Below, in pieces: positions 1-15,341 of a stretch of DNA of 64,000 nt (position 1 is the stretch's first letter; each line of letters opens with the position of its first letter). The position numbers and the translations under genes are program-made. Under the pieces are notes generated by a model. The model did not search any database. It saw only the letters and a program-made list of their open reading frames with translations, and had not been told where the DNA came from. The DNA lies in assembly GCA_024704765.1 (NCBI GenBank), contig JAKMXF010000335.1:208141-272140 (forward strand). Direction: 5' to 3'. Origin of the DNA: Oopsacas minuta. Its lineage: Eukaryota; Animalia; Porifera.

Positions 1-3000
1 TACCTTTTGCTATAGGTTTTTCCAATATCTTTGGCCAGGCAGTTTAATTTCCCAACAATTATGGATATTACAAAAGAGAGTGGGTATTTGAAAGTGTTTA
101 CATATGAAACCAAACTGTAAATATCATACTCCAGCTAAATATTTATGATTTAAAATGTTCTCTTAATCGAGGCCAGCCTTTTCGCCGGCACTTCGAAGTA
201 CTGATTCAGACAAAAATGAGATTTCGAGTTTTCAGGAACTCCGCTTTAGTGGGACAAACTTGCTGAACCGAATATTTAAGCAGATTTCTGTGAATATATC
301 TGCGAAACATTTTCCATAACCAGATTTCATTTTCAAGCTAAAAGTTCAGAACAGCAGTACTACACTACTACCTCTATTTGTTAATTAACAATTGTAACAA
401 TTATTCTATGCAAAGTTCGAACCTAAAAAATGAAATTTATTAATTATCTTCCGAATTCTTAAATTCTTTTACATTCAGACTTTACAGCTGTAGGATTTTT
501 ATAATTAACCATAAATTAGTTTCACTTCTAGAACATCTTATTCAAAATTATGTGACCATCTGCAACGCCAGTTTAAGGGTTTAAATGATAAATAGCTAAA
601 AGCCTTAATAATCGCACTCTATTGAAATGTCAGTGTTGTATGATAATGAGGATTCAGTAGATGTAATGTAGTGAGTAAATATCAGTAATCAGACTTGATT
701 GATTCTTGAATTAGAAACATATTTGATTGTCTTCTTATTTGTGATTATACAATATTTGAGTTTGAACATGCTCCAACGGTCAACTTTCGTTTTATTGAAG
801 CTCAAGGGACCGCGATAATTACTTCGAAATAATAACTGGTATAACTTATGATACTTTGACGTTTTGGAACCATATTTGTACAATTTCAAACTTCGATATA
901 TGTGAGCATTTCAATGTAACGAGAGTTAGGCTGTATTTTGTGAAAATACCAAACATTAGAAACTTCAATTAAACAAAATTGGTGAATATTTCATTGATTT
1001 TAAGCAATTTTTGGTTAAAATGTAATTAAAGCATGAATACTTCAAACATATAATAATTGTGGAATTAATAATTTTCCTACATCCGTTCTTCTGCAAAATT
1101 ATATTTATGAATATAAACAAAAATTTGGGTGTTTTTATATTAAAAACCGAATTTTGATTCGTGGGAGCGAAGATTCTAATAATTATTAAATTTACATTAA
1201 TTATCCCAAAATTAATTGATTTTTGAATAAAATGTGGTGAATTTTGTAATTAAAATTTTATTTAAAATAGAGTTTAATGAAAATTCTATTCGGTTAGTGG
1301 TGATAGGAATTGACACGCATTACAATCAATTTTGAGTAATTTTTGTAAGGAATTTGATACCTCGAAAAACTTCCAAATTCTTGAATAATTGATGTAATAA
1401 TTTCTAGAAATGTATAATAAGTTTGTTGACCCAATTAATTATATTTTCACACCTCATTCAAATGAAGGATGTCATTCAAATTGAGGAATAATCAAGCAAA
1501 CACTTTTATTGAGAATGACAACCATTATCTAGCATTTGTTCTTGAATTACACTGAATATATATTACTCCAAATTTGAGGATTACCTTTCTATTCAAATTT
1601 TAATCTGTGAAACAACAAATTAACATTTCACTCTATTGCAATTGAGAATGAACGGTTTACATTTCAATGTCTTGTTGACATCTCCATTGTATTTTGATAG
1701 TATTATCTCAAATATTAATTAGAAAATCTCTTATTTCATCCGAGTTAATTTTGGAATAATATTTCCAGGCAGTTTGTCAAATTATGCGGTTTGTTCTGAT
1801 TAAGTTTTGTGGAGTTTCTTATGTAAATTTTGGGAAACTTGTATTGAATAATCGGTAGCATTAGCAAAACCTAAGAAATTTTATTCTCGTTAATATTAGC
1901 AACTTAATAGGAAGTAATTTTGGCCTCAGATATCTTATTATTTACTTTAAAGATATTTCCAATTTAGATTCCCCTTTCATCTCTGGATTTTCTGATATAA
2001 TCAATAAACACAAAACCATATTAAGCATGATACATCTAAATGCATAGAACACGGGTTTAATTGGTTTGTATCGAAAAATGTTAAAACTCCAAAAAAGCGG
2101 GAATCTGATTTCGAAATTCCTTTGTTTTTGGCTTTCTCATTTCTATAAAATTTATAATTTTCATGATTTCGAAATAACAATTTACTTTAGTGTATTAAGA
2201 TGTGTATAAGAGACTTATATTATGAAAAATCACTGGAAGTTAATCGCGAAATAATAAGGAAGTAAAATGAGGGATTTATGTAAGTGATTTTCATTTGGAA
2301 AATAGGGCTAGAGTCGCTTATTATGAACATCAAGATACCAAAATTCTCGTCCATATAAGCGAACATATTTAACACAAAAGCTAAGGGGGAAACGTCTAGA
2401 TATCACCTACTCGGTTTCGAGTTTTCAAGCCTTTTCTATAAGTAATCATTGCATATTATTCGGCTATTGGCTAATGACAGTCACAGTAGTGCTTTTTGGC
2501 TACTCTGATTTTTAAATCAGATTGACACTCTCTAAAACTGACATAATTAATCTCTCATATTTTGTGTTTCCTGTCCACATGCTTGTGCATATTATGCAAA
2601 CTTTCCAAATTTAAGAATATTGAATCAGTAATTTTACTAAACCTGCAATTCATGCAAATTCCTCAAAATTTCTGAGAATTTTATTCCCCACAATTTCAAC
2701 TTAACCACTTATGAATATTCCTATTATCTTAGTCACAGAAGTTAAATGATAGCAAAATACCCTTTCGGTGCCATCTTTGCATGGTCAAGTTAAAAATATT
2801 TTCCCAAATTACAAAAGGAACAATGGAAAGAGGATACTCAAGCCATTGAGACTGGTACAAAAATGCTCTCAGATGGCTTGTTTAATTAATTTACATTTTG
2901 GGTTAATACACATGACAATACAAAAATTCTCCAACAGATGCATAAGTAAAACTAAAATTATGTGATTAAATAAAATTATTCAAGTTGAGCCCATTCTGTG

Positions 3001-3374
3001 GAATTTTCGTAGGAATTTAAGGGTATGCCTTTTGGGAATTCAAATTGTAAGTGTGGGTGGGATGAGAAATGATAGAGAGTTTGGTAATTCACTTTTTGCA
3101 GGAGTTATTTCCTATATGAATGTGTAGGAATAATTTTTTAACATATTAATACATTCTTCAGGAAAAGTATCTTACAGGATAAATAGCATTATTGATTTTA
3201 GGAAATTATTATTTTGACTATATAAGGTAAAGAGACGCAAGGTGAATATGACATGAAAATGTGTTAACTAAATTGGAATACTAGTCCTTCGGGAGTGTGA
3301 AATATGTTGCCCTGAGGCAAACATGAAAATTGGCAGTGAGAGGTCACAAATTTATATTTGAAGAAATTTTATAG

Positions 3375-6300
3375 GAAAATTACAAAGGCCAAACTCATAC
3401 ACACCAGAACAACGGAATTTACTCTTAAAATACTTTGATGACTACAAAATGAACTCCACACATAGAAAGAACATGCAATTGATTGAACAATGCGCACAAG
3501 AGCTTACAATCCCCGTACCTAAAGTCAAGGTAAGAATTACAAAGTTAGTTCATATTCACAAAAGTGTATTTTAAATGTAATTACACCTCTAGAATTGGAT
3601 CGGAGCTGAAGCTGTGAGGAGAAAGAAGAAACTCGGTTTATTGCCAAAAGCTAAAATGTATCAACCAAGTATGCATGCGCCTCAAATCAACAATGTAAGT
3701 CATGTTTAATGTACTTTTGCTATGGAAGACAAATCTCTAATTTGACAGGTCTTTATATGATTATATTCCTCTATAGATTGTCTTAACACCTAATAAAACG
3801 ATGAAACGACAGAGATCAACTCCTATCTCTAAGCCTATCCCTCAGGCTGGTTACCAATTAGTATACGCTGCATCTGAAAAACAGATTACAGAAGCGAACG
3901 GACATGGTAAGTGCAGGGGTGAAAAATTTCGTAAGGAAAGACAACAGCCAAAATTCAAGAGTCCACAATGAAATCCAAAATTTGCTTTCTTATTTTATTT
4001 CCCTGCCATCAAACAATGATTCCAGACAATCTCCTGCTTGTCACGTTCTTGCAACTGTCCAGATTTTGAACGTCTGCTATTATTGTAACAATTTATAGAT
4101 TACAGTAAATTTGCAATGAAGCAATACTCGACAGCTGATATGATAAAACCAATACCAAATACAGTTTTCGCGAAAACAATCCCACATGGCGTGAATCCAG
4201 CAATTGGGCAATTCGAGATGGGACTGGAAGAAACGAATGTACTTACGCCTCAAACAGTGATAAAACAAACTCAACGTCTCGTGAACTACCAACTTGATGT
4301 TGACGACCCACAACAAATGCTGACTGCAATCCAAGAATTGGTGAGTTGTGATCATATGGTATTTATATTCCATGAATTATCTTATTCATAGCAATTTCTC
4401 TCGGTTTTCAAGTAGGTACTAGTATTACCATAATCGACTGTAAATAATTCTTAGGACAAGTTTATATATGTGATTAGTAATATATGGAAATTCACGAGAA
4501 TTTGTGAAAATAGATCGAGACGATATTGCAAGCTTCAAAAATAGTTTTTACAGTGTGAAACCAGAAAACTCTAATAATAAATTCAACTATCATACAGTCA
4601 GCAGCATCAATTGGAGGCTATATGCTAATTTTTAAATGTAAATTCTAGGAAATTTAATCCTAATACTATAGAAGACATTAACAGTAACAGAATTCTGAGA
4701 ATATTGTAATATGATTATCATCTGAATCAAATATGGTTAAAATAGAGTCAATATGATAATAATCGCTGGGAATGGTTTTATCCGCGATCTCGTTTTACCA
4801 GATGTTGTGAAATGTTAAATTGTAACTTTTTGTGCCATGGTTCGAGCACATGACCTACATACATGGGTATTGATTCTATTAAAATGTGTTCCTGTGTATC
4901 ACCGCATGCATAGCGAGATATATACAATGGAAATGGTTGTCATTCTTATTATTTATTTGTAGCCACTTTAAAATTGATCATTTAAATGCTAAAGTGGGTT
5001 GAGTAACAATAATTGTTTGATTGAGCGCTACAGAATGGAGATAATTGTAACTAGCATTATTTTGGGGGGAATTAGAGGTTGATTTGTGTACTAGAACGAA
5101 CTTAAACATACAATTTACATCTTATTTCCATTCAAAAGAGGTTTTTGAATAGAAATTGCTTACTAGACCCGAACATATGTCAATACAATTGGATATATCT
5201 CTCAGCATGAATAGAAGCAATTACTTTTCAAAACTGAATTATTCAATTTGTGCTTTCTAAGCTCCAACAGTTATACATATAAGGATTTATTGCATTTTTT
5301 CCTCTTAAATATATCAGTTACCAAGAGCTGAGTCCAATTATAAGCCTTCTGACTATGTTTTCGTATCGCTAATGTTATTAGGGGAGTAACCGCCATAAAC
5401 GGAGTGACATGGACGCTGAAAAATGCTACCACGTTTCACCGTTCGTGGAGATTCATTTGTGCGGGGTGTGATGCAAACTGAAGTATGTAACCTTTGAAAA
5501 GTTGTCTCTTTGGATGATGCTAATTTCTGCAATAATAAATTCGATAAATTCACCTATAAATTCTAAATTTAGTATCAATATTTGGAACAACAAGGATTTG
5601 AGGGCTACGGAGTACTTGTAAACACAAAACAAATACAAACTCATCTTGTATCAACACACAAAGGACTTTCCTATCATCAGAGTCAAGTTAGAGCTGGAAA
5701 ACCTTTAGAGAACCCATTCATGGGATATATATTCTCAGAAAATGGTGAGTTTCAGTTCCATTTTGAAGTCTGTTCGTAATTGGCACTTAAAACACTAGTA
5801 ATCATATTTGATTATGTGTCTAATAACCTTAGCCAAATTACTTACTTTAAATCATATTTTGTGGGCTTACAATGGAAAAATTATTGTAATTTCGACCACT
5901 GAAATAAACTGCAGCATAACTTCGAACATTTGTTAGCAGAAACCGCTAAATACTTATGGATCTTCAATTGGTCGCCAATAATTAAGACTTTAGACTTTCA
6001 AATCCAAAATGTGTAATTAGCATTTAAAACATTTTATCTCCCAGATTTGAGGGTTATTGAAATTTGATTGAATATACATTCTACTAAACTTTCTCAGAAA
6101 AATAGTTGTTAATTATTAGAAATACATCACAAGATCTAATATTGTCATATATTTGTTATTTTTATTTTTGTTTATTTTTAGAATCTACTGATAAACCTGC
6201 AACACCAGTAACCTCTCCAGATAATTCCGTAGAAATGAATCTTAGACGAAAAGTTGAAATCGAATTCGCACTCAAATACAGTAAGTAACCTCGACACATA

Positions 6301-6959
6301 TACAGAATGTCCTTATTAAATGTTGGAAATTCTGCATAGAAATAATGAAACTGAATTTACATGCCAAAATGACATATTTTCACAGCTGTTGCCTATTAGC
6401 TTTTGTCTATAGCAAAATCATAACTATTTACATACAAAAATGAACTGTATGCCCATCAAATAATAAACATGGATTTTGTATAGTACATAGTTCGCATAAT
6501 AGTAAATTCGCGTATTTCAAGGAAAACTCAAGCAAAATACAATTTGCCAATAGGCGAACTCCACTGTATACATCTTTGGCCCAATATCTTTGAATTTTTT
6601 CTTGCTCGTAAATAACCTTCAAACCATGCTATACGCTATAATTATAAATATTTTTTATAGAACAATGCACTGGTAAAACCGATATACCATACGATAACCT
6701 ATCAGAGATGGACATAATGATAGCTGGTATGCCAAGTAACATAGAATTCAATGCACCTCATCTTTACAACAAATATCAACTCGAACAACTTGCACAAGCC
6801 TTACCACAGATTTTCTTTCTCAGACCACAAGACACCCATGAAGAGACTGTTATAAAAACTGAACCAGATTCGATCAGTTCCTATAATTACATCCAAACCG
6901 TTCCAACTGCGCTGCTCCCAAACGGACACATAATTCAACCGACATTATTAAAGCTTTAG
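3375..6959 (+). CDS. Atypical (HDX-like) homeodomain + TFII-I N-terminal-like domain + one GTF2I-like I-repeat; 5' exon not identified
   Basis: Exons 3375-3529, 3593-3694, 3777-3906, 4099-4340, 5573-5744, 6182-6280, 6661-6959; all GT-AG, phases consistent, about 398 aa to TAG. Translation includes SYTPEQRNLLLKYFDDYKMNSTHRKNMQLIEQCAQELTIPVPKVK|NWIGAE, MLTAIQELYQYLEQQGFEGYGVLVNTKQIQTHLVSTHKG and LRRKVEIEFALKYKQCTGKTDIPYDNLSEMDIMIAGMPSNIEFNAPHLYNKYQLEQL. Confidence 0.8.
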
Positions 6960-7337
6960 TAGAATAATAATAGGTAAAATTTTGAACACACACATCGCGC
7001 AATCGAGTATGCATTCCACATGAATCACTTTAACAATAGTGTGTTAGTCATTAAAGCGCAGATAATGATCTCCTCTCTTCTCTCCTTTTCTCCTATAACT
7101 TTTGTAGATAGTTACAGTAGTTATTTTAGACTCTACGTAGCATGCTGCATATTTTAACTTTATTTCTTACTATGCAACTCTATGCAGACATCTCATGTAA
7201 TATTGTATACATATTGGTATTGATAATGGATACTAATAAATTTTATATCAACACCTGCTTACTTTATTTATATTGGGGAGGAGGTAACTGAGATATCAAT
7301 TGGGGTATTTGACTGATTATTCGCCATTGCCTTAGAG

Positions 7338-7476
7338 CAGAGGTTCCCAACTTGGGGTCTATGGACCATTTTGTGGTTCACAGGTGCAGGTGACGGTAGG
7401 GGGTCCACAGGATCAATTGTAGTCATATGGGAGGGGTCTACTTGTTATCCACGAGTGAAAAAGATTGGGAACTCTG
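7338..7476. mobile_element. hAT (Charlie-like) MITE
   Basis: TIR CAGAGGTTCCCAAC / GATTGGGAACTCTG; 8-bp TSD ccttagag / cattagag (7/8). Related partial copies near 7778-7895, 17369-17480, 17800-17885, 27180-27236, 35005-35145, 36160-36245, 47895-48000, 51825-51900. Confidence 0.8.
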
Positions 7477-9249
7477 CATTAGAGAAACATCAAAGATATT
7501 TTTAATATAGAATAGAAATACGTATATTACAAACAATGGATATCAGCAAAGAATTTAATTCAAGGCTTAAGTAGTAAACAGTGTTCCTACAGGATTCTTT
7601 AATAACTCTCAAATTTTGTGTGAGTGCCGTCTTTGCCACATACGTATAATGTATTAATCCCGAAATACAAATTTGTTCATTTTGCTCCGATTTCTGCAAT
7701 ATAATCCCATCGCTGTTATGCAATAATGCGTATACTGTAATTCTTGTTTGGCAAGTAATAATTATGTTAAACTAGATTAGCGGTTCCCAACCTTAGATCC
7801 ATGGCCCCTTTGGTGGTCCACAGAATCTATAGCAGTATATGGGAGGGGGTTCAACAGAATGTGTTAAAATTGGTATAGGGGTCCACTGGTGAACTAGACC
7901 TACAATATCTGGTTTATAACTTCCTACCAGTTATGGTTTAAACTCTTTTTAAGGCTTTAGTCGAATCACATTTTTCTACACATTTTCAGCTCGTAAGGAG
8001 CAGTTCAAACATTATATAACACTACCAAGGGGAGGAGATGGTAAACAAAATGTGACAGTCACGTCAAATATGTATGACACAAAGGAATAAGCATTTTCCG
8101 GGATTTTGTGTAACATACCGTTTTAACGGCCACTAAATATCCTGCCTGCTCTCTCACTAATTTTGTTTAATTAAAAATCAATGATTTTCCCTATATTAAG
8201 CTAAAAACTATAATATTTGGGTAAAGCAATGATGTGAATTGAAAACTGATAAAGCCAGCTAACTTGAATTTTTTTTGACATCAATGATTATTATAATTAA
8301 GTGGAATGGATGATATTACAGGCTTCACTTGGAAATAATTATGCATGACTTTATGAAAATGAATAATGCACATGCAATATTAGATGCTATGCGAATAAAC
8401 GCACTGATTAGTTGTCAAATGGAAAAGAAAATACATTCAATGTTGAAATTAGTATTGTTTACCTAGCAAAGTATTCTTACCTTGAGAGTAAGCTAGTGTA
8501 GACAACAACACTGTTATCATAAATATTATTAATGTTGTATCAAATTTTGACAGTAATCGTAATGTGTTTTCTAATTACTGACTTAATAGAGTAAGTCGGC
8601 AAACAAAAATGATAACAATACAGCTTTTTAAATATAACTAATCATCGTATTTACAGCTGTAGATGATCTATATTATTTTTTATATCACATATAATCTACT
8701 TCCTATATTGTTTGTGGATTTGTATATTGAAATTCAAATGTTTCCTCACATGTAGTTTTGGTCAAGAGGACTTAACCCAAACTAGGGGGTGCAAGCCCTC
8801 TTCCCCCTGCAGTGGCCTGCACCCACCGGGCCAGAGCCTATGTTCAGGGCAGTGGACCTTATTAAATAATGGTATTACAATACATGTTTTCGCCTAAAGT
8901 GCAATTATTGTTCAATTCGTTTGTGAAATTGTAAATTAGTAAGATAATAAGCAATATGGACACAAAAGGTAAAATTGAGTCCATACTTGACTTGTAAATA
9001 TAAATCATGTGGTAACCATGGGATACTAAGTAATATACAAACGAATTAATAGTGACATAACTATTACAAATTTACTAGAAATTTCCATCAGTTTCGATAT
9101 ACAGGTTAATATTCAAAGAATATAATTTGGCATTTTATTAAAAAGTGAAAATGCTACGCTATTGATGAACTTGAAAGTGTAACCAAAATTGATTATAAAT
9201 AGATAGAAATATGAAAATTCAAATATAAACATCGAGAATAATCAGAGAG

Positions 9250-12200
9250 ATGAGCAAGATAATTTTGAAGGAAGGTTTTGTCAAAGTTCTAAGCGGAGAG
9301 AAAAATATATTCACCGTTGGGAGTATCAAACTCGGAAAGAAGGTAAGTATTTACAAAATTGTTAATTAACCGAATACGGCGGGGAAATGTGTGATTTTAT
9401 GACGTCAAAAGGTGCTAAGTCTCGTTTTTGGTGCGGGAATTGGTTAAAACAAAGTGCTAATTTAGTGTTCCCTTTCATTACGAACATAAAACTTCCGCAG
9501 CGATCGGTAAATTGAATTTATATTAAAATTTCTTACCTAATATCAGAAAACTTGAAATATTTAGTTCGTCCCTTTCAAATTCATATTCTAGGCACACAAA
9601 TCATTTGTATTTTCGCCTCCCAGATTCAATGTATTTTAACGATATTATTTTAAACGTAAAATTGGCAATACCCCTGTATCTCAGATATTTAATTTGAATC
9701 TGTCTTATATAAGACGTTACGGCATTAATAGCTACATATATGGTCGTGTTATAGAATTATCCACACGAATTGTTCATTTGAAGCAACATTATTCCTAGAA
9801 AATGAAATTCAAGGGTAGACAATTTATGAAAGTGGGAAGACTTCTGTTTCAATTAGAGCTTAGGAGTATTAAGCCCTTCAAATTGCTAAAACTGGATAGA
9901 CTTAAGCCATTTGCTTTGAAAGGTCATAGCATCCCTAATCTGGGATATATAGCATCCATTTGATAACTATAAATTGCTTATAACTTAGTTACTTAAATGA
10001 TAGATTGGAATGTTTATTGATTCTATGTAATAGAATAGTAAATGGAATATTAATTTGAAGATAGCTTGTGCATAATCATAGGTTGTTAGAATTGGATAAT
10101 TATATGATAAATAATGAATTAATACTCTCGGAATATTGAAAGTTCATTGAAAGAGAATAATCCGTAATAGTTCCAATTCAAACGAAATTGTAAGTGAAAG
10201 TAACAAGAAATGAAAATGAATGTTGCAATTTCTTGTCATTAGAAAATTATTTTAGAAATATAAAATTAGCAGAAATGATACATATTTATTACTTAAGGAA
10301 ATCTACAATGCAATAATTTCTACGAATTTATATCTGTGAGTCATATGGTGCAGTGAACTATAACGACAACACGTATGTAGCGACGATCTAAATTCTATTA
10401 TTCACTATCCACTTTGGACATTCCTTTCGTTGCAATTTAGCCTTCTAGCTGTATATGTATATTTTAAATATGGAAGGAAAATTATAGAGTAAATTCATGA
10501 AGGCGAAAAAGCAAATTCAGCCACACTAAATTATTTCAGTGTGTCTGTAATTATAAATATGATCTGATAATTCGTAATCATTACATATGTTAGCACATTA
10601 GCCTGATATTAGGACAAATGTATTTACAGATCAGCAACATCTCATCAAGTATAGCAAAATATTGGCAAAAGGACATTTTTTCATAACAAACATGCTACAA
10701 GCCTAGAATTATATCGAGCTTCACAGATATACGTTTAATGACACATTATAGTTACTACTATCATTTTCTGTAAATGTTTGTTTTGATAGAAAATAGACAG
10801 TAAATAAGCCAGTACATCAAACCAAAAGTTGTATTTTACGCTGTGATATAAATACTTGGAAGTTCCCGAATTCGAGTACAGTGGGTCCTCTCTTATTGTC
10901 CGCTTCGAACTTCATTGACCCACGGTATTTGCATACTTGCCAACCCCCTAGGATCTTTGGTTTATCCCGGGATTCTGCAAGAAATCCAGTGAGGAATTTG
11001 AGAATCCATGTCCAATAGAACATAAGTTCGTCAAATATATTCATAGAATAGATCGATTAAACTCAAAATACGAATAAATAACTTGTAAATACCAGTACGG
11101 AGAGTATCGGGCATTGTTCAACCACATGTTAGCTAATCGTTACCAAAATACATGAATAATTATGATACCATTATATAGAGAGTGCTGAGTTGTACCCACA
11201 GTGAGAGAATATATTAGTTATATCTAACTGCTGATGTAAATATTGCAGGCTGTATGATGTAATGTACAAATTACATATGGCCAGAGCCATAATTATATTG
11301 TTAATGAGGTTTATTTCATTTGCTCTAATTTGGAGTGAATACCAATACTTCATTATTCATTCACTATTCACCATGTAATGACATGCAAATACAAATGAGT
11401 ATAATTATTAACGAAGGTGTTAGGCTATAAGGAATGCTAGTTATTCGGATGGAGAATATATGTCAAAATAACCCTAGACTCAAACGTGACCGTACTAGCT
11501 CTGCCGGTTTGAAATAATAACATATTTAAATGTAAATATTTGTTTTGCTATAGACAAAATGGAATAAACAGTACTTAAAGCTAGCTCAAGATGAAAAAGA
11601 CAAGAGATTACAAATATGGATATTCGACACACCGAACGGTGAATATAAAGACATTCCCAAATCCATTTTCAGCTTAGATTCTAATACACAAGCCACACAG
11701 ATGGCTGTAACATATAACGAGCAATTTTGTTGCATTATTTCAAGCTCTAAAGAAACGCTAACAATTTCCTGTGATTATTATGGTGAACTGCTAGACTGGA
11801 TCTCATATATTAAAAGGAATGTAAGCGCATTCAGTCGAGGGAGATTGCCAGCGATACCGAAAGACGAAGATATTAGGAAGGAGTGGACGAGAGGTGTGTC
11901 AGACCCAGGAGTAAATAGGGGAATGAAGGAGAATAAGACGGATAGTGTGACTAATTTGAGGAAGCAGAATTATGAGTGTCCAGTGAGAGTAACATCCACA
12001 TTTGAGATTGAAAATAATCATATTTATGGAGGTGAGTTGAGCTCAAAAATACACATAATTATAGAAAAATATATAGAGTTAACTCTGATAGGAAATTGTT
12101 TGTATGGTTCTGCTTCTTGCCAAGTGCATATGCATACTTGCCAACCCCTTATACATTTCTCTACATTTCCAAGTTCAACAACCATAAATTGCAATTCCAG

Positions 12201-14011
12201 GCTATTAATTTGGCCTTTCAAAGTTCAAACGTTACGTAACGCAAATTCCCTAAATTAGTCACGCTTTTTGCCCGTTTTCTAATACCAAAAGAATGCGGCT
12301 GTCACACTTCGGAAAAGACAATAAATTTGCAAATATAAGCGAGAATCAGAAATAAAATGTACTGAAATACACGATACACTTGCAAATATTGAGATATTTA
12401 TTTATCAAATATATTCTTATAGACAGCAACATATTTTCGGTGGAAATAGAACAAAATGAGACTTCAGAAAGACTGAAGCTATCAGGGGGCTATAACTTAA
12501 TCCTACTAAATGATGGAATACAGCTTACGACACAGGACAGTAAAAGAGTCATATACTTCTGGCATGTTAAAGTGCTTAGAAGATTTGGATCATCAAATAG
12601 CCGATTTTCAATTGAATCTGGAAGGAGTAGTCAAAGTGGCGTCGGTAATTTTGTTTTTTTCACTCCAAGTTGTAAACTAATCAATGAAAAGGTCACCGAT
12701 ATGACTGAGCGTATAAAACATAATAAGAGTTCAGGTGACGTAGTTAGGATTGAGTCAAGGACAACTCCCACAGACATATCTCCACTTACTCAAACACATA
12801 GTGCAACTAGGGTTCAGACATCAATTGCAAGCGAAAAATTCGCCCAAAAAGAACGCGAGTATCCCAAAGAAAGTATTCGGCCAAATCCAATTTCAAGTGT
12901 AGATTCTTTGAACGAGAATGCATTCTATCCAATTAGAGTTAACAATGAAAGAGAAAAGAATCTTATAACAACGAAAAAAAGTTTACCTCCGGAATCTGGG
13001 AATATCAGCGATTATAGTTTGAATGAAATACAGAAAAAACCGCTTATAAAGATTCGTTCATCACAAACAAGTGATGCAGATTCAAACACTATTGAATTGA
13101 ATACAAAACCAACTACAGTACATATAGACAGGCCAGATTATGTGAATTTTGAATCCTACTTAAGAGCAACTGCAGATGTTCAAGACCCTTCAATAAGTGA
13201 TGCCCAAACTCCAATGAACGCCGAAGATTATCGTAAAATGTTGCCAATTGCATTCGAAAGGATGCGAAGCGAATCTGAACCAACTCCACCCAAAATTTGT
13301 CTACCAAGGGAAGATTCCAATAGCATGTATGTAAATTTGCAAAATATCCTACCAGCAAATCCTGATGATAAAATACCTATGGCCAGGGAATACCAATCAA
13401 ATTCTGTTGAGAACTTAAGAATGTCACCAGAAAGGCCTTCTCATATGCAAAAATCCGTTCACTCTCTTAGCACACAAAATCTAGCAGGCTTAAGTGGAAA
13501 TCAGGACTTTGAAATACCGAGTGATACAAATTTACAACCAACAGCCCTGCCAAAGTCGTTAAGCTTAATGCAAATAACTCACAGACAAGGACAGCCCCAA
13601 CAACAACAACAATATTATCCGCCACAGCAGCAACAATTCTATCCACAACATCCATGTCTTCATCCTCCTACTTTTATTCCACAACAATTCCATACCGAAC
13701 CAAACCAGCAGCAATATCCAAGGGGTGTTGATAGATTTTATCAACAGCCACCACAACAGCAAATTGATACACACAGACAAGTTATGTATCAGACAAACAC
13801 AGAATTCCCCTATTTACAACAACTAAGACTACCGTATGCCCCTTCTGTCTGCCCTCCAGATTCATTTCAACCTACACGCCAATATCCCAGATCTGCTCCC
13901 TCATCAGGAATGATAGATGCAGTACAAAGACCGGCAATACGAGATGTATATCCCTGTAGCGCTCCAAACACCGGGAGTCATTCTATGCAAAGAGATATCT
14001 ACAAGCCCTAA
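9250..14011 (+). CDS. DOK/IRS-family adaptor (PH domain + IRS-type PTB domain + Tyr-containing, Pro/Gln-rich tail)
   Basis: Exons 9250-9342, 11554-12031, 12423-14011, phases consistent. PH-like start IILKEGFVKV...KWNKQYLKL and end ELLDWISYIK; PTB signature FWHVKVLRRFGSSNSRFSIESGRSSQSGVGNFVFFT. Confidence 0.8.
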
Positions 14012-15341
14012 TAGATCTGAAATAGAAAAGCCAACTATATTAATAAGCTTATTTAATTAGGAATTAGTATTGTCTGTAGGTTAAATAATTGGCTATATTC
14101 TGCATGCTATGCAAACTGCTTTTTGTTTTGATATTTGGCTCTTATGTTCATTAATAATTATATTTGCTCCCAGATTATTCTTATTAATTCAGAATTCGCT
14201 TGCTAGAGCTGCGCGGCTTTCGACAGCATTAACCTCGGCACTTCGTGCCTCAAAATGAACAAAGTATAAAATAAATGATAAAAACGTGAAAATTGGATTC
14301 AGTGATATATTTCTCAACTTTTATCGAACTATGTTTACTTTCTTGATAAACACCATAAATGTATAGTATACGAAATTCGAGTCCAGCATTCTACTAACCT
14401 TTTCTTCACAACGGAAAAACAATCAGACAACAATTCATGATAAATATTACATATCAATACCGTAATTTCCTGTATCGCAATTTTAAAACGAACAATCTAA
14501 TCATTATCTGAACTGAAAGTTAGTGAAATTCGAAAAATACCAATCCCATTCGTTTTTAATATTCCTTTTCCAAAGCAATTTCTATATGATTTTTCGAAAA
14601 TCACATCATTAACATATAAATTACAACCATAATATTATCTACACTGAAAGTACCGATAGAATTATGGTAGCAATACATGTGAGACACTAAAACAATACTT
14701 AAAGATTCAGTTACAATTTTCGAAGACAATTAGTAATATTTTTGGCAAAATCAGGGAAGTGCTAGTTATTATTCATCTGCAAATTATTGAATATTGTATA
14801 CGTGATTGTTGCAATAATGTATTTTTAAGAAACAATGAAATCATAAAAATGTAGACGTTTGTCCTAGCAAAGGAAGTGGAAGGTTTGCTGACAATATTTC
14901 GTCACATTTGTGAATGTAACAGTAACAGTAACAACCAAGTACAGTGTAACCTCCACAAAGGAGATGCAAGGGACGCAGAAATACTACCCCATTTCTACTA
15001 AATTCTCCATTTATGGAGGTTCAATTGTTTGGGACAAAGAATCCGCTATTTCTCATACCCGTTTCCACCTTTTGTGAGTCGGTATTATTGTATAGCTTCA
15101 CTTTTCGGTCCCGTTGCGAACGTGTTAACCTTCCTAAACTAACCAATTTGATAAGCAAATAGAAATATCACATAAATATTATATAATTAGCATTTAACTA
15201 TATAAATATGACTGAATTGGAACAAAAATAGAAAAATATATATTTTGTGTATTTAGTATAGCAACTACACACTGTAGCCATTAGGAGCTCTTATAAGCTA
15301 AATAATCTGTAAAAAAGGGAAAATACAAAAATAAGTCAAAT

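Follow-up and report, generated by a model that had tools for sequence, protein, structure and literature searches.

Were the parts of the vertebrate TFII-I transcription factors already joined in one protein near the base of the animals? The question is raised by LOD99_8396, a gene of Oopsacas minuta carried by contig JAKMXF010000335.1 of assembly GCA_024704765.1. The window, that is the whole stretch of DNA analysed, spans 64,000 nucleotides of this contig, and all coordinates below are window positions. A sequence-only reading had proposed, at positions 3375–6959, a frame encoding a homeodomain, the N-terminal domain of TFII-I and a single GTF2I I-repeat, in what looked like an early-branching animal. 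The animal is indeed a hexactinellid sponge, and the three blocks named in that reading coincide with the three conserved blocks of a sponge protein family. The reading that we prefer, with a probability of roughly 0.7, is that LOD99_8396 is a single-copy, expressed host gene in which an atypical homeodomain, a TFII-I-like N-domain and one I-repeat are combined, that it represents a pre-vertebrate relative of the TFII-I module and that its product probably acts as a nuclear transcription regulator. We do not claim that the sponge gene is a demonstrated orthologue of GTF2I.

LOD99_8396 is one expressed gene

LOD99_8396 is a real, expressed glass-sponge gene. The seven exons of the window at 3375–6959, all on the forward strand (+) and all with AG/GT borders, splice into an open frame of 398 codons, closed by the TAG at 6957–6959. 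The translation is 100% identical over 398 residues to residues 120–517 of a 517-residue NCBI entry, "hypothetical protein LOD99_8396 [Oopsacas minuta]" (P0059), to which UniRef gives the name "Homeobox domain-containing protein". The phase-consistent seven-exon frame predicted earlier is therefore correct as far as it goes, but it is not the whole gene: LOD99_8396 has eight coding exons, of which the window carries exons 2–8. Coding exon 1 lies upstream of the window on the same contig, at −1892 to −1538, and is followed by a 4.9-kb intron; it encodes residues 1–118 and the first base of codon 119, a segment that is acidic and Ser-rich. An acceptor at 4106 was considered for the exon ending at 4340 and rejected, as it breaks the frame, and 4099 was taken as the start of this exon. 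A homologue database search found a single copy of the gene in Oopsacas.

Four public runs from one sample contain the stretch. Three of them are DNA-like, with a flat depth across exons and introns, and the fourth (X4) is RNA-like, with a word depth of 2,700–15,000 on every exon versus 0–38 on introns. The RNA-like depth, at 1,100–3,300, continues past the stop codon over 6960–7190 (+), which corresponds to the 3′ untranslated region. The X4 contigs contain the joints 3694>3777 and 3906>4099, both of GT..AG type, the first at a depth of about 3,200. Loose contig ends read from 3529 into the exon at 3593 and from 4340 into 5573, and the reverse in both cases, while the loose end at 3375 carries the last 26 bases of the upstream coding exon. 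These joints and ends agree with the junctions predicted from the DNA; the junctions 5744|6182 and 6280|6661 are supported by the depth profile, the NCBI model and the transcript of the orthologue from the glass sponge Vazella pourtalesii.

The same data bear on the concern that the model is a chimera, in which an adjacent homeobox gene and a TFII-I-like gene were wrongly joined. The sole plausible break would be the 1.2-kb intron between 4340 and 5573, and this is crossed in both directions by the loose ends of X4. In addition, all blocks are held in one frame by the Vazella Trinity transcript (P0045, 512 residues, 87% identical) and by about ten demosponge transcripts or gene models. On the strength of the RNA ends across 4340/5573 and of the Vazella transcript we rejected the chimeric model, whose probability is close to nil: the homeodomain exons and the exons from 5573 onwards, whose assignment to separate genes would have refuted the sequence-only reading, belong together.

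Two other Vazella isoforms (P0001/P0044) differ in their N-terminal part. One has a different short N-terminus (MLFAG...) and is devoid of the whole homeodomain, and the other starts at a Met within the homeodomain; they may result from an alternative promoter or be assembly truncations. An isoform without the homeodomain would look like a minimal TFII-I unit.

The C-terminal block is a GTF2I I-repeat

The I-repeat is encoded by the last two exons. Coding exon 7 (6182–6280, +; residues 386–418) contains a linker and, from 6241, helix 1 of the repeat (LRRKVEIEFALKY), and is followed by a phase 1 intron located after ...LKY. Coding exon 8 (6661–6959, +; residues 419–517 and the stop codon) contains the remainder of the repeat, up to about 6827, and the C-terminal tail. 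Taken alone, coding exon 8 scores 21.7 bits (E=2.7e-4) with Pfam GTF2I (PF02946), which is below the gathering score, and has TFII-I chains as its best PDB matches; none of the other six exon translations matched a Pfam family. The full-length proteins reach 27.1 bits in Oopsacas, where the match covers residues 406–471 of P0059, and 32.2–32.9 bits in Vazella, for a gathering score of 27, and the domain is matched by 10/10 sponge family members, with a best E-value of 2.5e-9. When a family profile built from ten sponge sequences is compared with the PDB, nine solved GTF2I domains are found at E<=0.0015, the best being 2d9b (E=4e-8), which we take to be repeat 1 of human TFII-I.

The predicted structure gives the same picture. 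We used an AlphaFold2 model of residues 310–479 for structural comparison of both the repeat and the block that precedes it. The repeat is modelled with a predicted local distance difference test (pLDDT) value of about 90, and VIA-align superimposes it onto all ten solved GTF2I domains with Z-scores of 9.1–11.5 and r.m.s. deviations of 2.3–3.7 Å over 73–86 residues, the next chain having a Z-score of 2.5. The same ten GTF2I domains occupy the top ten places of the Foldseek search in the PDB. The identity of the I-repeat, as proposed from the DNA, is thus firm, as testified by Pfam, by the profile search and by the fold. Each of the sponge members possesses one Pfam GTF2I stretch per protein and not the several tandem repeats (2–6) that characterize the TFII-I family. 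Vertebrate TFII-I proteins bind DNA through their I-repeats.

A bacterial protein of 1,937 residues from a Bacteroidia metagenome-assembled genome (P0003) was also proposed as a relative by the searches and was rejected, its score being a sum of weak matches over tandem immunoglobulin-like repeats. It obtains 135 bits on Pfam GTF2I over 19 stretches, no single one of which is significant, and consists of about 20 tandem Ig-like (He_PIG) units with a motif, ITYD...V.GLPSGVSF, that resembles the core of the I-repeat. Repeat-summed false positives of this type could mislead domain counts.

The block preceding the repeat bears a suggestive likeness to the TFII-I N-terminal domain

Upstream of the repeat lies a second conserved block of ~70 residues (314–385), which is distributed over two exons; a phase 0 intron lies in its helix 1, after ...IQEL. 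Coding exon 5 (4099–4340, +; residues 248–328) carries a linker and, from about 4296, the first helix of the TFII-I N-terminal-like domain (hereafter N-like block), and coding exon 6 (5573–5744, +; residues 329–385) carries its core (GFEGY ... KG ... KPLENPF ... F). The N-like block is 99% identical to that of Vazella and 51% identical to those of demosponges and, together with the homeodomain, is the most conserved part of the protein, with 24 invariant columns in an alignment of 13 sponge sequences.

When compared by hhalign with the N-terminal regions of five vertebrate members of the TFII-I family, the N-like block gives P=0.0023 over 31 columns, with a probability of 12.6%, in an alignment that pairs (Q)THLLAT.KGK.YH ... 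PLENPFIGYVFSE with a vertebrate stretch ending in DFQNDFVKYC. The score of 20.3 was reached in 0 of 250 column shuffles (mean 9.7, standard deviation 1.9, maximum 16.9), and negative controls in which either N-domain was aligned with the I-repeat gave 13.1 and 8.4. A permissive alignment of the N-like block together with the repeat is collinear, pairing positions 5–167 with positions 3–173 of the TFII-I N-terminus and repeat 1. Similarly, Foldseek aligns residues 1–170 of the model with residues ~12–206 of TFII-I and GTF2IRD1 entries, and the ESM Atlas's own model of the N-like block has a template-modelling (TM) score of 0.72 to TFII-I. The order and spacing of the two blocks match those seen within the first ~190 residues of TFII-I; for the first helix of the N-like domain, no confident alignment to the TFII-I N-terminus was obtained. 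A Foldseek comparison of the whole, low-confidence model with Swiss-Prot models produced extended alignments of high r.m.s. deviation across disordered segments and served as a pointer only.

Another possibility, that the N-like domain is a degenerate second I-repeat, was rejected (hhalign P=0.08 and 0.58). At the level of sequence, the comparisons suggest that the N-like block resembles the N-terminal (dimerisation) domain of TFII-I, which contains a leucine zipper. The earlier assignment keeps the backing of the hhalign P-value, the shuffles and the collinearity; the hhalign probability and an AlphaFold2 pLDDT of 52–71 do not raise it above a suggestive, probable likeness.

The first conserved block is a homeodomain with a degenerate recognition helix

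Coding exon 2 (3375–3529, +; residues 119/120–170) encodes the N-terminal arm, helix 1, the long loop, helix 2 and the start of helix 3 of a homeodomain-like block, and its 3′ end at 3529 coincides with homeodomain position 46. Coding exon 3 (3593–3694, +; residues 171–204) encodes the remainder of helix 3 (NWIGAEAV...) followed by a basic RRKKK stretch, which may be a nuclear localisation signal. The intron between the two exons falls between homeodomain positions 46 and 47 (K170|N171, phase 0), at the very place read from the DNA, so that W172 corresponds to Trp48.

Residues 120–186 are modelled by AlphaFold2 as three helices (129–141, 149–162 and 166–183) with a pLDDT of about 90, onto which solved PDB homeodomains superpose with TM-scores, normalized by target, of up to 0.83 and an r.m.s. 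deviation of about 2 Å. In a comparison of the sponge block profile with the PDB, the best true homeodomain is 2da4 (E=2e-4), presumably that of human HDX (a literature look-up of the clone name gave no confirmation). Extradenticle/PBX structures are close behind at E=7e-4 to 4e-3, and are followed by engrailed; one non-homeodomain match in this search is a summed repeat-protein artefact. The top structural cluster of the ESM Atlas, "highly divergent homeobox", has a TM-score of 0.73 over 68 residues and is tied with a cnidarian cluster. Leu16, Phe20 and Trp48 (L135, F139 and W172) are invariant, as are W172, I173 and G174 in ten sponge sequences. The block is a homeodomain by fold and ancestry, with a recognition helix that does not carry the canonical DNA contacts; the predicted structure and profile matches place it with the HDX/TALE-like long-loop type, with Ala at positions 51 and 53 in Oopsacas. 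The HDX-type homeodomain of the sequence-only reading agrees with the fold, the 2da4 match and the HDX cluster, but finds no counterpart in Pfam: neither Homeodomain (PF00046) nor Homeobox_KN is matched at E<=10 by the exon pieces and the full Vazella protein, or at E<=0.1 by ten full-length members.

The sequence of helix 3 is W-I-G-A-E-A-V in hexactinellids and, in demosponges, W-I-G-S/A-E-A/V/S-V. No sponge sequence keeps Asn51 or Arg53, through which homeodomains make their principal base and backbone contacts: Ala or Ser is found at position 51 and Ala or Val at position 53, and position 52 is an invariant Glu. DNA binding by this block is doubtful because of these replacements, and canonical binding to TAAT-type sites is unlikely since the recognition helix is degenerate. 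One may nevertheless imagine the block as a working, non-canonical DNA-binding domain and the main determinant of specificity, the I-repeat being used for protein–protein contacts. The confidently predicted fold, the 99% identity between Oopsacas and Vazella (51% to demosponges) and the conserved basic tail after helix 3 (K/R-R-K-K/R-K) would suit such a role, as would the adjoining HMG box of demosponges described below, which fits a DNA-contacting region. Set against them are the residues found at positions 51–53, the lack of a Pfam homeodomain match and the DNA-binding function of the I-repeats in vertebrate TFII-I, and we consider this division of labour unlikely.

The family is conserved in sponges and its module is found beyond them

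Conservation of the family extends over both Hexactinellida and Demospongiae. Hexactinellid orthologues are 81–87% identical among themselves and ~33% identical to those of demosponges, where full-length relatives with the same block order are present in Halichondria, Ephydatia, Dysidea and Amphimedon. Conservation with demosponge orthologues is concentrated in the homeodomain-like block (51%), the N-like block (51%) and the I-repeat (42%), the linkers being 2–16% identical. Demosponge genomic open reading frame fragments break inside the repeat after ...LKY, in the same place as the Oopsacas intron.

In the demosponge relatives, an extra HMG box separates the homeodomain from the N-like domain; it is detected as a sub-threshold Pfam HMG_box in 3/10 members and reflected in the UniRef name of the Amphimedon protein, "HMG box domain...". 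The corresponding region of Oopsacas, 3777–4295 (residues 205–313), comprises coding exon 4 (3777–3906, +; residues 205–247), a weakly conserved linker with a pLDDT of about 30, and the beginning of coding exon 5. Compared with demosponge orthologues P0060–P0071, it is a divergent linker, predicted to be disordered, in both glass sponges. A profile of the demosponge box found nothing at this place in Oopsacas or Vazella, and an HMG box in Oopsacas was rejected. The difference would be due either to a gain in demosponges or to a loss in hexactinellids.

With the last exon as query, an exhaustive phmmer search retrieved 43 proteins below an E-value of 1e-3, namely the orthologue from Vazella, numerous sponge-like fragments of exons, members of the vertebrate TFII-I family and the one bacterial artefact. 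Homologue searches by word index, with P0045, P0028 and the family alignment as queries, gave sponge sequences alone and no cnidarian, bilaterian or HDX sequence. One ESM Atlas cluster groups 166 proteins, mostly from cnidarians, of which 52% have Pfam GTF2I and 18% have Homeodomain; it resembles the sponge protein in the homeodomain part (TM 0.73) as well as in the N-like part (TM 0.75). A mollusc cluster combines Chromo, GTF2I and Homeodomain. These cnidarian and mollusc proteins are known from cluster summaries alone, which suggest that proteins with a homeodomain and GTF2I may exist in both groups.

The repeat fold also reaches further. ESM Atlas clusters of hypothetical proteins from Basidiomycota contain it, with r.m.s. 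deviations of 2.3–2.9 Å over ~82 residues, and it is found in FAM200/ZBED5/GTF2IRD2 transposase-derived proteins and in molluscan C2H2 zinc-finger/BTB-like proteins. AlphaFold database (AFDB) clusters with the same fold bear the automatic names Chromo domain, YqaJ recombinase, BEN and HTH CENPB-type, and several of them, to judge by their accession series, are presumably non-vertebrate. An upstream N-like part often accompanies the I-repeat fold in these AFDB and ESM Atlas proteins. The predicted folds hint at a wider, partly transposon-linked superfamily outside the reach of Pfam GTF2I. Because of the sponge relatives, the cnidarian, mollusc and fungal clusters and the AFDB fold clusters, the module predates the vertebrate TFII-I family and has a wider distribution, and outside sponges it is often linked to transposon-type domains.

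Origin of the gene

Two histories other than descent shared with the TFII-I module were weighed. In the first, the N-like domain and the I-repeat form an old mobile eukaryotic module with many partners, and independent domain shuffling placed it in the sponge gene, off the line leading to GTF2I; the gene would then tell little about how the TFII-I family arose. The AFDB clusters named after Chromo, YqaJ recombinase, BEN and HTH CENPB-type domains are what such shuffling would leave, as is the presence of the fold in Basidiomycota, in FAM200/ZBED5/GTF2IRD2 transposase-derived proteins and in molluscan C2H2 zinc-finger proteins. The best solved match of the sponge repeat is, however, 2d9b, assumed above to be TFII-I repeat 1; residues ~15–190 of TFII-I are matched collinearly, and with similar spacing, by the N-like domain followed by the repeat; and the direct sequence search at E<1e-3 gave sponges and the vertebrate TFII-I family, bar one bacterial artefact. 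We regard independent shuffling as possible, if on the unlikely side. Since fungi and transposon-linked proteins of invertebrates also contain I-repeat-like folds, the sponge gene can be read otherwise than as an "ancestor of TFII-I": the pre-vertebrate, TFII-I-related nature put forward by the sequence-only reading is retained, and direct ancestry is one of several readings.

In the second, the frame would belong to, or be recently domesticated from, a mobile element with a GTF2I-like domain. GTF2I-like folds are found beside transposase-type domains in other taxa, and GTF2IRD2 itself carries a transposase-derived C-terminus. LOD99_8396, however, has eight coding exons with GT..AG introns and one copy in Oopsacas; its orthologues show the graded identities given above, with the intron place in the repeat kept; its neighbours are ordinary host genes (Argonaute and IRS-domain); and its product has no transposase, integrase or chromo domain. 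A transposon gene is very improbable and was rejected on account of the host neighbours, introns and orthologues.

A further proposal extends the preferred reading of LOD99_8396 as a relative of the TFII-I module. The HDX and TFII-I families could be two halves of one ancestral metazoan gene with an HDX-type homeodomain, a TFII-I N-domain and one I-repeat. This form would have been retained in sponges and apparently in cnidarians and some molluscs, and would have given rise in the vertebrate line to HDX, in which the homeodomain was kept, and to GTF2I/GTF2IRD1, in which the homeodomain was lost and the repeat multiplied. We consider this scenario speculative and quite unlikely. If true, it would remove two "vertebrate orphan" families at once, and it offers a concrete hypothesis for the origin of both.

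Proposed function and weight of the evidence

The vertebrate TFII-I family is characterized by dimerisation and by binding to Inr, E-box or GGATTA-type DNA sites. By analogy with vertebrate TFII-I, the sponge protein would be a nuclear transcription regulator. Its acidic N-terminus would form an effector region, and the basic stretch after helix 3 would provide a localisation signal and unspecific contact with DNA. The N-like domain could serve as a pairing surface, as in TFII-I, and the single I-repeat as the specific DNA-reading unit, so that a dimer would present two repeats. Contact with DNA would most likely be made mainly via the I-repeat and the basic tail of the homeodomain-like domain.

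Several observations weigh against this reading of the gene. The Oopsacas protein clears the Pfam GTF2I cut-off by 0.1 bit only. For the N-like block, the hhalign probability is low and the alignment covers 31 columns; the low pLDDT of this block in the AlphaFold2 model is accompanied by helices where the sequence pattern suggests strands. The homeodomain block is missed by Pfam and its two key contact residues are replaced throughout the family. The junctions 5744|6182 and 6280|6661 are not among the X4 rows listed. Finally, dimerisation and DNA binding are transferred to the sponge protein from vertebrate TFII-I. In spite of these points, the profile and structural matches of the repeat, the collinearity of the two C-terminal blocks with TFII-I and the conservation of the family in two sponge classes argue for a relative of the TFII-I module.

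Genomic surroundings

The region is AT-rich, with 35% G+C. The upstream neighbour is a gene with Argonaute/Piwi domains on the opposite strand (L002 1–1868, −), and the downstream neighbour encodes an IRS-domain protein of 719 residues (L002 17142–20851, +; in the window from ~9250). In the contigs of three runs (X1, X3 and X4), one base is missing relative to the window at 3357, in the run that precedes the acceptor at 3375; this reflects either polymorphism in the length of the intron or a difference in its assembly.

Novelty and significance

The sequence-only reading had not recognised the architecture as described. Literature searches aimed at GTF2I/TFII-I outside vertebrates (sponges, cnidarians, amphioxus and PF02946) yielded no paper on such domains in sponges or cnidarians and none on this architecture, most subscription journals lying outside the literature searched, and the HDX literature searched yielded HDX background only. 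The gene, as an unnamed protein, and the domain labels assigned to it automatically can already be found in public databases, and the repeat fold is not confined to animals, which limits the gain. What the locus adds is that parts regarded as vertebrate-only existed, and were linked, near the base of the animals. It also provides a minimal, one-repeat protein in which DNA reading by an I-repeat and the role of the N-terminal domain can be studied.

Comparison with known systems

The homeodomain-like block shares with the TALE class (PBX/Extradenticle) an extended loop between helices 1 and 2 and the W-[FI]-G motif in helix 3. The sponge protein differs from TALE proteins in having no PBC domain, a loop that is two residues longer, and neither Asn51 nor Arg53.

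With HDX, the block has in common the long-loop atypical homeodomain, and the motifs KY[FW]D..GMTS and V[KR].WIG are common to both sequences in the alignment with 2da4. The latter keeps Asn51 and Arg53, whereas the sponge proteins have Ala or Ser at 51 and, in Oopsacas, Ala at 53. The HDX cluster of the ESM Atlas shows Pfam Homeodomain only, without GTF2I. HDX is regarded as a vertebrate homeobox orphan, with no invertebrate orthologues listed (PMC2211742), and is reported with more than one homeobox (PMC6118893), whereas the sponge protein has one.

The cnidarian and mollusc clusters display the same pairing of homeodomain and GTF2I as the sponge protein, to which the mollusc cluster adds a chromo domain. 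Pfam FAM200-GTF2IRD2-like is also seen among the ESM Atlas matches with a GTF2I-like fold.

The vertebrate TFII-I family (GTF2I, GTF2IRD1 and GTF2IRD2) has the same I-repeat fold and Pfam signature as the sponge protein, the repeats being ~25% identical, but two to six repeats where the sponge protein has one. In TFII-I, the N-domain lies directly upstream of the repeat (residues ~15–190), and the N-like block of the sponge protein bears a weak but specific likeness to it, with similar spacing. This shared module is N-terminal in TFII-I and C-terminal in the sponge protein, where it is preceded by the homeodomain-like domain and, in demosponges, also by the HMG box.

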